NCBI GenBank assembly: GCA_048013815.1
Contig: CM106586.1
Coordinates: 18,600,001 to 18,664,000 of the forward strand
Direction of reading: 5' to 3'
From: Setoptus koraiensis
Lineage: Eukaryota; Animalia; Arthropoda
Length of the DNA stretch: 64,000 nucleotides
The position numbers and the translations under genes were made by a program. This document shows, in pieces, positions 126 to 22,799 of the stretch (its first letter is position 1; each line of letters begins with the position of its first letter). A model generated the notes under the pieces. It searched no databases. It saw nothing but the letters and a program-made list of their open reading frames with translations, and was not told where the DNA came from.

Positions 126-451
126 TTCAAGGCCATTTATCGCGCCTTGCAAAATCTCATGACCTACAATTCTCTCATGACTAGCTGGGATCTTCAACGA
201 CTGTTGTCAATAGGAGAGGATCTCGAAGATATCAAAAATGTGGCGCTTTTTATCTTCATTACTAACCCCCTGACATTTGGTGACTTGCCAATGGTAAGTA
301 TATCATGGAAGAGGAGCAACCTCAAACTGTTAATTCTTGAATGCATAAAGATTCCCCGACGTTCACGTTATCTTCTTTGTACCAATATATTCTATAGCTG
401 ATTGGATGGATTGTTTCGGGCATAACGTTATTGTTACAATATGCAGTGTGA
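126..451 (+). CDS. 3' end (exons 2-3) of a gustatory-receptor-like gene whose exon 1 lies upstream of the window
   Basis: Exon 126-293 (ccag|TTC...ATG|gtaagt; FKAIYRALQN...TFGDLPM) and exon 398-451 (tatag|LIGWIVSGITLLLQYAV*). Same 168-nt + 54-nt exon structure as the five downstream paralogs. Confidence 0.8.
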
Positions 452-767
452 AATTTTAACCTTGTCAGGTCATAAGTATGGAATCGAGTCCAGAAGTTCC
501 GTTCGACAGATTTAGGTGAAATCTTCTCCTCTTATTTCCCCGGCCAACTGAACTTTCGACCGATAGAAAAGTTGAGAACATGGTAAAGCATTCCTCGGGG
601 CGTAATCAAACTCGGCCAAATTTCGCAGTATTATGCAATCTTAACCTTGTGCTTAAATGACTACCCAATGTACAAAATGTATTTACGTCCTCAATGAGGC
701 ACTTTTTAATGGAATAGTCATGAGAAGTAACCATAACATGGGCACTTTGACAATGATGAGTTTTATC

Positions 768-1096
768 GTGCGTGCATAGAGACTTTCATCGACATGTGGT
801 TAAATGAGCCAGCAAGAGGGCGACCACAAAATGCCCAAACTAAGAGGATCATGAGGCAGAAAATTTATGGTCCGTGAAGCACGATTCTAATAAGTGTCTA
901 TTTAAAGTGGTAGAATGAATCCATCACAGTATAACTAGATCAGACACAGTCCAAAAACTGGAAAAAGCAAATTTGTGGAGTTTATTAGAAATAAAAGGGA
1001 AAGAAGTGAAAATATAGATTCAAACGGACTGAAAATCAAAAATATCTGCACCAGTTTCTTGGTCGTTCACATTGTATGGAAGCGGACACTATTGGG
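768..1096 (+). promoter_or_regulatory. Conserved GR upstream module (representative copy); GTGCGTGCA also at 6086, 9476, 11439, 14763, 16615 and 20132
   Basis: Collinear blocks GTGCGTGCA and AATTTATGG..GAAGC recur in all copies; GGTAGAA(T/C)G and AAAAGATTTG recur in most. The motif lies 329-386 nt upstream of each ATG. Confidence 0.7.
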
Positions 1097-19230: not shown

Positions 19231-20517
19231 GATTCTCATCTTAGGAATTGTGCTTATACATGTCGAATAAATTGAAGTGGTTTCGCGTATATAGGGTGAA
19301 ACTTCCCTCTGAATCTCGCTGCGCGAGAAGTGAAGCCAAGCTCAACCTTTGCATGAGACAGATGAAGATGATTTCAACCCAAACAATCTCCCTTGAACTA
19401 CCACGATAGCAAGGCCATGATTGATGGCCGAAGAGAGATTCTATCATGTGTCTCCAGGAGGATGGTGCAAATATTTCTAGCTTCAAATGCCTTTCATGTC
19501 TATCGCTTCACTCCTTCTCTGACATTTCCGATAAACTTAGTGAATTTTCTTCCCTAGTCAATGGACTGTCTCTAATCTAGCTACATTTTACTCGATACAT
19601 GTTATCTCTTTAATCAAGCACTAGAAGTCTCGAGGAGATAAATTTTAGAATAGCGCATCCAAGAACCTAAATTCCCCACCTCAAAATCATGTCAGTTCAA
19701 GCGGTTTGTGTGTGTCGAAACTATCTTGTTCTTTCTCCCTGACAATAGTTTCGTTTATCGAATACCTATAAAACAGTTTTGTTTCTCAAACTAAGCATTC
19801 AATCGATAAAAGTTGTGATTATGTTAGTGAGGTAGCAAATCTCGGAAGGCCCGGGACTCGGGGCTTTGTGGAACAATGTACACTCGGACCACGATACCTT
19901 CATGTTATGGTGATATTTATCACTCGATACTAATCTTGGAAATAGTTATCAAAAGCTGGAATATTTCATACGGATGATACTCGACCCTATGGAAAGATTG
20001 CTTCTGACTCAAGTGACGCCAATGCGACTACAAGAAACTGATATTTTTAGAAATTCAGAGGTCATGTGCATTTCGGTTTCCACTAATATGGTTCGAATGT
20101 CAAAACATTGCCATCAATAATAAGCTGCATAGTGCGTGCAGAGAGGATTTCATCGAACTGTGGTCGATTGGGGCATCGAGTACTCATACATGTCCAATAA
20201 GAAGATCGGGAAAGCTTCAACAAACAAAAAACGCTCGAACCAACAAGGTTCTGACGCTGAGAATTTATGGTGCATGAAGCGAGATTCTAAACTTCTGGTC
20301 GCGAACAATTCCTGGAAAGATCCCAATGTGACTGATCCTAATGATTGAACACATTAAGGAGAGTGCAATTTCAAAACACATATTCGAACTGGCGAAAGAA
20401 ATTTACGAAGTTAATCGGAAATGGAATGGAAACAACGGATTAGAAAGAATAAAACGGTACTAAAACGCGAAAAGGTTTCTGAGCGTTTACTTTCGTATGT
20501 AAGCGGATATTATTGAG

Positions 20518-22799
20518 ATGGATTCAATCAAATTCAATTTATTTCAGCTTTCAATTTTCGTTGTCATATACCTCATCGGTTCAGGAAATTTCGTGCGTCC
20601 ACCTGAGGAAGGAGAAGGTGCAACACATGAGGACCAGCCGGAGATCAGCAAGGAGCCGAGAGTAAAGAAGCGATCATTGCTCGATGGAATGGGAGCTCGC
20701 GTCGTCATATTTCTGAGAAACAGACAACAAAAACCGATCTTTCTTCTATGGGTATTTTTTTCTTATCATATTGGGCTTTACCTCCTATTCGTTAACATGG
20801 TGCGCGGCTTCGGCAGCAAAAGTCTTATAGCTCGATTAGAATATTTATTGGTCGACACATGGGCTCCTTATGGCTGCAGTCGGTTGGCCAGCAGAGTCGC
20901 AACAATACTTATCACAGAAGCTTTCATGTTTCGTACGAGGAACATCGTCGCAGACATGGGGATCGAGACTGGGCGCCAACGGTGGGATCGAGCAGCAACA
21001 TACATTAATTGCCTTAAATTAACTCCAAGAGCCTGGATGTATATTTTGGGTCTCACATATCGAGTTCAATGCAAAGATAAAACGCATCGTGAAAGAATCA
21101 TCCGCAACACTAAGCAATGCGAGCTTCAGTTCGAAGTTGCTTCATCATCAGATAGGGCGCATCAAGATCGAATTTGTATTGCACATCGCGAAATTAGTGA
21201 CGCTGGTGTCCATGTTCGTGACTTATCCATCACGATTCGAGAAGATTCGGCGAAAGTGGGTCGCACAAGAAAAAGATTCAATTTTGACAATGACTTTCGA
21301 GAAATTGATTATCAGCTGAAATTTCCAGAGTACCTACTCGTGAACGGATCTCCACATATCATGGATTTAATGACACTAAGGATCAGTGTTTACCTGGTGC
21401 TATTGTGCATATTTGTGGTAGGAACGATCGCTCTTGCACTTGTGTGGATTTTATTTTCGATTGAACTGCACTATTGTGGCAATTCCTTGCCATTATTCAT
21501 CAAGTTCCGTCTATTGAGTTATATTTCGATGTTCACCGTTTTCACCATCGCAATGGAGCAATTTTCAGAGATGGGACTTTTTCTCCTTCACTGTGCAGTT
21601 TGCTACAGTAAGGCTAAGCAGACGCAACACTTGATATCACAGTTAATTGAACTATATCGGTCTTATGGAAAACAAACTTTGAGCTTCGGCGCACCGAAAT
21701 CTGAACAGAGCAACGCAAACGGAATCTATTCCACTACCAGTGACAACGAAATCAGCGAAGGCGAGGCTAGCTTCACAAATCCGCTAAGCTATACACTCAT
21801 CGATAAGTATGTAACGAATTCGATATGCAGTGCTCTATCGGAAGAAATAGACAGGCTCATCGAGATGATTATGGAGATACGCTCGGACCTAGACCAACTG
21901 AAGCGACGTTATACACGTGACATAAACATGGAACTTTTTTTCAAGATGCCGAGTGTTATACTGACTCTATCATCGGTCATGGGACCGCACAACCTGAGCG
22001 TCACGGTAGTTAGAGCAATTTATATGGTTTTGCCAGGATATTTTACTCCCATCTTAGTCCTCAGTTTTTTTGCTGCTCTTGTCCATTCTAAGGTGAACAT
22101 CACAACAATTGTCATTCGCCTTGTGACCCAATCTTCTGTGGCGCAGCGCTGAGTTAAATGTTATGATCGCCGCTTACTTCTCTCAGATAGCATTACATGC
22201 TATACGCTATCCAGCATCTTCTACGTTTTCTCTAATCTTGCCCCGACTTGGCCTACGATTTAGCCCTAGTAATGACGAAGCATGCCTCAGAGGATAAGTT
22301 GTAGGTCAGGGTGGGATGGGATGTGAGCAAATGTGCTGATATGAGGACGTGCGGAATCACGCTGCTCACTCCTGTGGTCTCCCATCATTCGATGACCATA
22401 ACTAAAATCAAACACTTTATCCACATTTTACATCCATCGAAACATGTCTCCAGTTCAAGGCCATCTATTATGCCTTACAGAATCTCATGACCTACAATTC
22501 TTTCATGACTAGCTGGGATCTTCAACGACTGTCATCAATAGAAGATGATCTCCATGATATCGACAATGTGGCGCTATTTATCTTCGTTACATGCCCGCTT
22601 ACTTTTGGTAATTTGCCAATGGTAAGTTAATCATTGGAGAGGGAGAATCTCGCACTGCGATTTCTCGACTGTTGACACTGTATGATTACGTCATATTTCT
22701 CATGTTGCGCCAACACATTCTCTTCCAATATACATATTCTCATAGCTGATTGGTTGGATCGCATCGGGCATTATATTGCTGATACAGTATTACGTTTAA
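20518..22799 (+). CDS. Divergent gustatory receptor-like 7TM protein, copy E (~598 aa), recent duplicate of D
   Basis: Exons 20518-22092, 22454-22621 and 22746-22799 (LIGWIASGIILLIQYYV*). Introns are nearly identical to those of copy D. Confidence 0.78.

Follow-up and report, generated by a model that had tools for sequence, protein, structure and literature searches.

This study revealed that the window examined here, a stretch of 64,000 nucleotides (nt) from the mite Setoptus koraiensis (GenBank assembly GCA_048013815.1, contig CM106586.1, positions 18,600,001 to 18,664,000 of the forward strand), carries a tandem array of paralogous genes which probably belong to a large and highly divergent lineage of the insect-type chemoreceptor superfamily. 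[quoted passage not shown] The assignment to a divergent OR/GR type is based on the predicted fold, the position of the last intron and the motif in the pore helix. Unless a contig is named, positions are those of the window.

Gene models and splice junctions

Five long open reading frames (ORFs) of 527-556 codons were found on the + strand of positions 1-23,200, starting at 1076, 6393, 11813, 17000 and 20518. They correspond to the first exons of five complete + strand paralogs, genes A to E, which lie within 126-22799 together with the 3' end of a sixth, gene Z. The transmembrane (TM) helices are numbered TM1 to TM7 throughout, and h stands for a hydrophobic residue.

126-293, + strand: gene Z exon 2, 168 nt; AG/GT borders, phase 0; identical to exon 2 of locus L015
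398-451, + strand: gene Z exon 3, 54 nt with stop codon; TM7 end with S-G-h5-Q-Y
1097-2647, + strand: gene A exon 1, 517 codons, TM1-TM6; ORF 1076-2710, conserved Met, HSK followed by a GT donor
3021-3188, + strand: gene A exon 2, 168 nt; splice borders, phase 0
3294-3347, + strand: gene A exon 3, 54 nt; splice borders, phase 0
6444-8033, + strand: gene B exon 1, 530 codons; ORF with conserved borders
8370-8537, + strand: gene B exon 2; splice borders, phase 0
8636-8689, + strand: gene B exon 3; splice borders, phase 0
11813-13402, + strand: gene C exon 1, 530 codons; sequence used for AlphaFold, with OR/GR fold matches
13754-13921, + strand: gene C exon 2; colinear with intronless relatives
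14039-14092, + strand: gene C exon 3; colinear with intronless relatives
17000-18523, + strand: gene D exon 1, 508 codons; ORF with conserved borders
18885-19052, + strand: gene D exon 2; splice borders, phase 0
19177-19230, + strand: gene D exon 3; splice borders, phase 0
20518-22092, + strand: gene E exon 1, 525 codons; duplicated recently from gene D (84% amino-acid identity)
22454-22621, + strand: gene E exon 2; splice borders, phase 0
22746-22799, + strand: gene E exon 3; splice borders, phase 0
22901-23154, + strand: relic copy of the gene E tail, 254 nt; repeats 22541-22788 with 240/254 identity

All six genes follow one plan of three exons, namely a large exon 1, an exon 2 of 168 nt and an exon 3 of 54 nt which includes the stop codon. 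Both introns are in phase 0 and bounded by GT..AG in gene Z as well as in genes A to E, with intron 1 measuring 336-373 nt and intron 2 98-124 nt. The ORFs of genes A to E end a few codons past a conserved H-S-K, where GT follows. An earlier reading of the window, made from the sequence only, had described these exon lengths and intron phases as well as products of 581-603 amino acids (aa). The gene models bear out both, the predicted products of genes A, B, C, D and E being 590, 603, 603, 581 and 598 aa long, respectively. The same reading had counted six paralogs with one three-exon plan; the plan is indeed found in all six, but only five of them are complete inside the window. A sixth full gene was rejected, as gene Z has only exons 2 and 3 there, its exon 1 of 524 codons lying upstream (G000:C2:18598198-18599769).

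The exon-1 ORFs of genes A to E are mutually 42-54% identical, with 84% amino-acid identity between D and E (tblastn E down to 1e-178), a similarity that exceeds chance. The relic that follows gene E retains intron 2 between the 3' half of exon 2 and an exon 3 carrying an in-frame insertion; exon 1 and the 5' half of exon 2 are missing.

Exons 1, 2 and 3 were searched and aligned separately, and TM7 was judged exon by exon. The predicted junctions are supported, at the level of sequence, by canonical borders and fixed lengths, by colinearity with intronless relatives and by the conservation of exons over introns. Exon 2 and/or exon 3 was recovered by the same rules in most of 37 other paralogs from the same genome. 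Exon 2 starts at the exact point where the uninterrupted ORFs of four distant public relatives (P0019, P0021, P0023 and P0024) continue after TM6, and exon 3 follows exon 2 without gap or overlap against these four. Between older gene pairs, nucleotide identity amounts to 80% in exon 2 and 79% in exon 3, compared with 61% in intron 1, 59% in intron 2 and 53% in the 150 nt after the stop codon.

Predicted fold of exon 1

An AlphaFold model based on an alignment of eight rows was unusable, with a predicted local distance difference test score (pLDDT) of 44, and was replaced by one based on 63 rows, comprising the window genes, 36 other paralogs and public relatives. The resulting model of gene C exon 1 (m4847e14f5e91) showed a mean pLDDT of 79 and a predicted template-modelling score (pTM) of 0.75. 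It exhibits six TM helices, and disorder is confined to two loops, at residues 195-253 and 399-437.

This model was aligned to 48,161 representative chains of the Protein Data Bank (PDB) in a structure search independent of Foldseek. The eight best matches were all insect odorant or gustatory receptors, with Z values of 14.4-17.3: AaegOR10 (17.3, over 270 residues at 4.0 Å), ApisOR5 (16.9), MhOR5 (16.5), DmGr43a (15.9), AgamOR28 (15.5), a chain of the OR5-Orco complex (14.7), DmGr64a (14.6) and BmGr9 (14.4). The ninth was an unrelated chain with a Z of 9.6, about 5 units below the receptors. The receptor alignments span residues 4-530 of the model, from the N-terminus to the end, and stop before the last helix of the receptors, as expected for a model without TM7. 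The description of the family as gustatory-receptor-like, which the sequence-only reading had given, is thus supported, and for TM1-TM6 these OR/GR matches speak against the possibility it had named, that the predicted structure might lack the 7TMIC fold.

The AlphaFold and Foldseek comparison proposed in that reading pointed the same way, AgamOR28 being the first match in the PDB with a probability of 0.94-0.96; its E of 0.34 is not decisive alone. In the ESM Atlas, whose results we treated as leads rather than tests, the model of a relative (P0027) was nearest to OR and Gr28a clusters (template-modelling score by target 0.78-0.80), aligned to its last residue. Among the neighbours of the window protein in the language-model features of the Atlas were DUF3537 (plant GR-like) and 7tm_7 clusters.

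TM7 motif, introns and topology

Animal GRs and GR-like proteins (GRLs) possess seven TM helices, an intracellular N-terminus and inner loops longer than the outer ones, and their TM7 ends in the signature (T/S)Yhhhhh(Q/K/E)(F/L/M) (PMC7746228). GR genes have three 3' introns in phase 0, of which the last lies within TM7 and the others in the TM6-TM7 loop (PMC5203786), and a phase-0 intron at this TM7 position is found in most arthropod Gr and nematode gur genes (PMC2680840; PMC5203786).

In the present family, exon 3 opens with six codons that read L-I-G-W-I-A or a similar sequence, after which come S-G, five hydrophobic residues, Q and Y. In gene A the motif ends in Q-H, gene B has V-G in place of S-G, and many other paralogs read S/T-G-h5-Q-F. 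The spacing of the motif is exact, and at best three of the four GR motif positions fit. Intron 2, in phase 0, lies exactly six codons before S/T-G in the six window genes and in every other exon 3 recovered (26 of the 37 loci), which is the position diagnostic of GR genes. Intron 1 is likewise in phase 0 and is located directly after TM6, so that two of the three ancestral GR 3' introns would be represented.

A hydrophobic TM7 spans exons 2 and 3, in addition to the six TM helices of exon 1. The predicted inner segments average 45, 139 and 114 aa and hold about 50 lysine and arginine residues in total, whereas the outer loops of 24, 12 and 5 aa hold about 5. Going by this pattern of charge and loop length, the N-terminus is cytoplasmic and the inner loops are long, which is the arrangement of GRs. 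Compared with usual GRs, the proteins have about 200 additional aa, and the excess is cytoplasmic: about 70 residues precede TM1, about 139 lie between TM2 and TM3, and a disordered stretch separates TM4 from TM5. The TM2-TM3 loop combines a disordered, variable part with a block that is better conserved than any other in the protein; this block, at residues 256-288 of gene C around F-D-D-D-F-R-E-I, has a pLDDT of about 70-90 in the model.

Family size, relatives and evolution

A profile of exon 1 gave 72 matches in the genome of S. koraiensis (48.76 Mb, two contigs). About 44 of the 72 are full-length open exon-1 frames, arranged in tandem arrays on both contigs, and the rest are halves or fragments, some of them with stop codons. 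The window contains the downstream end of a + strand tandem array of about 56 kb which starts near C2:18,566,881. The best explanation is that this is the newest end of the array, growing by local duplication and decaying by truncation.

Two loci on different contigs, L034 (G000:C2:11903883-11906648) and L035 (G000:C1:11490272-11493037), were found to be near-identical exon-1 ORFs with branch lengths of 0.002 and 0. They represent either a segment duplicated very recently between chromosomes or a duplication within the assembly. Identical partial copies with the same score were located at C1:11494933, C2:11908543 and C2:14990147.

With regard to public protein collections, a word-indexed search found three relatives, and 25 were obtained when 1.84 billion representatives were searched exhaustively with a HMMER profile. 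All 20 that were looked up originate from Logan, JGI or ENA assemblies and bear no protein name. The close relatives P0001-P0003 end a few residues into intron 1, while P0020, P0022 and P0025 end a few residues beyond the aligned TM6; the suggestion of the sequence-only reading that ORF callers would truncate such genes before the pore helix is confirmed by these six entries. In more distant relatives, which are 693-810 aa long (profile E 1e-9 to 4e-5), 3' introns are absent and the whole TM7 is visible. When a profile of these distant relatives was searched back against the genome of S. koraiensis, it matched the window genes (gene A with an E of 2e-8). A database search with an alignment of the long relatives returned the query alone, and a metagenome scan with the family alignment A1 gave no match. 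A non-exhaustive literature search found no published description of the family.

The metagenome scan with P0023 recovered the contig of this protein itself (L058, JGI Ga0268249_1000041, 79.5 kb). Genes are densely packed on this contig, where intron-poor ORFs encode Rpb2, Thg1, an ABC1 kinase and a 915-aa protein with a trypsin domain, and the contig appears to be part of a compact eukaryotic genome within a metagenome.

A Pfam 7tm_7 search of the whole S. koraiensis genome yielded only two matches, both below threshold, with 24.5 and 24.1 bits: L050 (G000:C2:8509530-8513141) and L051 (G000:C1:17960826-17964326). Their ORFs encode 680 and 651 aa with low-complexity inserts and exhibit recognisable GR TM7 motifs. 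Unnamed orthologs of L051, 417-950 aa in length, are present in Logan and ENA assemblies.

In the maximum-likelihood tree, genes A to E fall into a well-supported clade of 20 paralogs of S. koraiensis, all located at 17.3-19.3 Mb of C2 and without any sequence from another source. In older clades, single paralogs are joined to public sequences, such as L041 to P0012 and L029 to P0004, and judging from the tree these public sequences would be relatives or orthologs kept in other species. The 20-gene clade, the relic tail after gene E and the fragments with stop codons within the arrays support, as far as sequence comparison goes, birth-and-death evolution with a recent local burst, in agreement with the lineage-specific birth-and-death first proposed.

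The ratio of nonsynonymous to synonymous substitutions (dN/dS) in pairwise comparisons of exon 1 is about 0.4-0.7 over a dS of 0.08-0.8; genes D and E differ by a dN of 0.065 and a dS of 0.113, and one very young pair reaches about 1.2. Judged by these ratios, selection on exon 1 is weakly purifying, and the ORFs stay open. Chemoreceptor expansions commonly show weak purifying selection. In a set of 42 paralogs, TM3 and TM4 (entropies of 2.44 and 2.35 bits) vary as much as the disordered loops, while the most conserved parts are TM5 (1.35 bits), its cytoplasmic extension (1.45 bits) and the motif of the first intracellular loop (1.21 bits).

Other genes in the window

Several further ORFs were identified in and beyond the receptor array. 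An ORF fragment at 3395-3826 (+), which starts 48 nt after the stop codon of gene A, carries a phospholipase-D HKD motif (PF13091 4.7e-8, PF00614 1.2e-7) and may belong to a PLD3/4-like gene as one of its exons or be a fragment sitting within the array. Between genes A and B, a 178-aa ORF at 4722-5258 (+) exhibits a signal-peptide-like start and an acidic, coiled-coil-like body and matches no Pfam family. The ORF directly after the array, at 23848-24315 (+), encodes a 155-aa protein of the NDUFA12 family (PF05071, 1.1e-10).

Further downstream, the tandem ORFs 33446-34960 and 36072-37604 (+) encode proteins of 504 and 510 aa which are 84% identical, have signal-peptide-like N-termini and match no Pfam family; they look like a second orphan pair of duplicated genes, apparently secreted. 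Two ORFs of 710 and 661 aa, at 30459-32591 (+) and 56540-58525 (-), are rich in Q/P or S/Q/N and also match no Pfam family, the first having a hydrophobic N-terminus.

Discussion

Several observations weigh against the assignment of this family to the OR/GR-type channels. In Pfam, the exon-1 ORFs matched no family at E<=1, including 7tm_7, Trehalose_recp and 7tm_6, and neither two parts of exon 1 nor exon 2 gave a match at E<=10, so the 7tm_7 match that the sequence-only reading had proposed to look for was not obtained. The distant public relatives matched no Pfam family either. A profile search of PDB sequences produced chance matches only, and hhalign gave a probability of 0.1-0.2% when the family profile was compared with L050, L051 and a nine-sequence GR-like ortholog group. 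In all copies seen, Gly takes the place of the Tyr of the GR motif, and in the distant relatives the Q-F/Y at the end of the motif becomes R. In Orco, the Tyr position belongs to the subunit interface (PMC7746228), so the assembly of subunits may differ. The model covers exon 1 only, and we infer the complete seven-helix fold from the exon-wise alignment and from P0027. Helical bundles can reach a Z of about 13 by chance, so the margin is real, not huge. Finally, the constraint is weak, with a high dN/dS of 0.4-0.7 and a value of about 1.2 in one young pair.

By analogy with solved ORs and GRs, the genes would encode putative tetrameric, ligand-gated cation channels with a chemosensory role. 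Exon 1 would provide a cytoplasmic N-terminus with a short N-terminal helix, followed by TM1-TM6, exon 2 the loop joining TM6 to TM7 together with the initial part of TM7, and exon 3 the pore-lining end of TM7. Contacts between the conserved extensions of TM4-TM6 and TM7a on the cytoplasmic side would hold the tetramer together, with the TM7b ends lining a central cation pore, and this pore may be gated by a pocket for small molecules within the outer half of the TM2-TM6 bundle. The combination of variable TM3 and TM4 with conserved TM5 and TM7 fits the recognition of different ligands through a common channel core.

It is unlikely, although the most probable of the alternatives, that the proteins possess the 7TMIC fold without being chemoreceptors, acting as an internal channel or scaffold, like PHTF and GrlHz, or as a light or heat sensor, like LITE-1 and Gr28b(D). 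The fold alone does not show function, and a long first intracellular loop, connecting TM2 with TM3, is the defining feature which separates PHTF-like Class-B from GR-like Class-A 7TMICs (bioRxiv 10.1101/2023.08.30.555482). The best-conserved motif of the family sits in this very loop, which suggests a cytoplasmic partner; as a speculation, the motif may bind a cytoplasmic partner or anchor domain. However, non-chemosensory 7TMICs such as PHTF are conserved and present in low copy, whereas about 44 intact and fast-diverging tandem copies are found here. The species-specific clades and pseudogene relics also speak against such a role, and variation is concentrated in TM3 and TM4, not in the cytoplasmic parts. 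PF12129, the N-domain of PHTF, gave no match in the proteins and none in the genome, the latter search being a weak one without any match anywhere. Membership of PHTF, which the long first loop had raised, was rejected, as this domain is missing and the family is unlike PHTF in copy number and evolutionary rate. The genes are therefore filed as a new divergent GR-like lineage rather than as relatives of PHTF.

Far less probable is an unrelated, lineage-specific family of multi-pass membrane proteins whose helical bundle came to resemble ORs and GRs by convergence. The lack of sequence or profile similarity to any GR in the Pfam, PDB-profile and hhalign searches would agree with this, as would the chance values that helical models can reach, but the eight best structural matches are all ORs or GRs, cover residues 4-530 and are separated by about 5 Z units from the next fold. 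An array of decaying or untranscribed duplicates with unused small exons is slightly more improbable still, for although dN/dS is high and relic fragments are present, about 44 exon-1 ORFs of about 1.6 kb are still open at a dS of up to about 0.8, the lengths of exons 2 and 3 are unchanged, their splice sites are preserved and their identity stays at about 80%, compared with about 60% in the drifting introns, and some paralogs pair on the tree with sequences from other sources, read as orthologs kept elsewhere.

Eriophyoid mites, which are among the smallest animals, are major pests of crops. The genome of the eriophyoid S. koraiensis has been reported to comprise 47 Mb, two chromosomes and 5,954 genes (PMC11920263), so that about 44 intact genes for GR-like channels would be close to 1% of the gene set and would constitute candidate host-recognition receptors. 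In the one detailed eriophyoid survey, that of Aculops lycopersici, two GRs were found and chemoreceptors were described as nearly lost (PMC7738191). Given the family described here, such mites probably have far more chemoreceptors than the published counts. We suggest more tentatively, as a proposal with slightly less than even prospects, that this family and not the two canonical GR-like genes forms the main chemoreceptor repertoire of eriophyoid mites. If this were true, the near-total loss of chemoreceptors would be an artefact of sequence searches and of gene callers cutting at intron 1.

Fold and intron position can recover chemoreceptor families that are missed by Pfam, BLAST and hidden Markov model profiles, while prokaryote-style ORF calling strips the pore helix from the truncated public copies. 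The invariant change from Tyr to Gly and the conserved loop motif pose structure-function questions for the whole superfamily.

Comparison with known systems

The family shares with arthropod GRs (7tm_7 PF08395; BmGr9, DmGr43a and DmGr64a) the predicted fold of TM1-TM6, at Z 14.4-15.9, the inward N-terminus with long inner loops, an S-x-h5-Q-F/Y motif that fits the GR signature at three of four positions at best, and the large, fast-diverging tandem arrays. It differs from them in its length of 581-603 aa, compared with about 400 aa (usual range about 350-500), in the approximately 139 aa that separate TM2 from TM3 and carry a conserved motif of their own, in the replacement of the motif Tyr by Gly and in the absence of a Pfam or hhalign signal. 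Insect ORs (7tm_6; AaegOR10, MhOR5, AgamOR28 and ApisOR5) are the best structural matches, with Z 15.5-17.3 over 270-291 residues, the difference in Z between ORs and GRs not exceeding the method's noise. ORs, an offshoot of GRs that is specific to insects, are not expected in a mite.

The TuGR-A/B of Tetranychus urticae, an acariform mite, resemble the present family in their huge, divergent tandem expansions with a motif that is often unrecognisable (PMC5203786). Phase-0 3' introns served as evidence of membership for the TuGRs, together with the signature of 7tm_7 and homology to other species' GRs (PMC5203786), neither of which was found for the S. koraiensis family.

The PHTF-like Class-B 7TMICs differ from it in being represented by one conserved gene rather than by many fast-evolving copies, and the family exhibits a GR-type TM7 motif and intron and no PF12129. 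Nevertheless, both combine a 7TMIC core and a lengthy first intracellular loop, which is here 139 aa on average and partly disordered. With a GR-type intron and motif in TM7 and a PHTF-like long first loop, the family may represent, again with slightly less than even prospects, an architectural intermediate between the two eukaryotic classes of 7TMICs.

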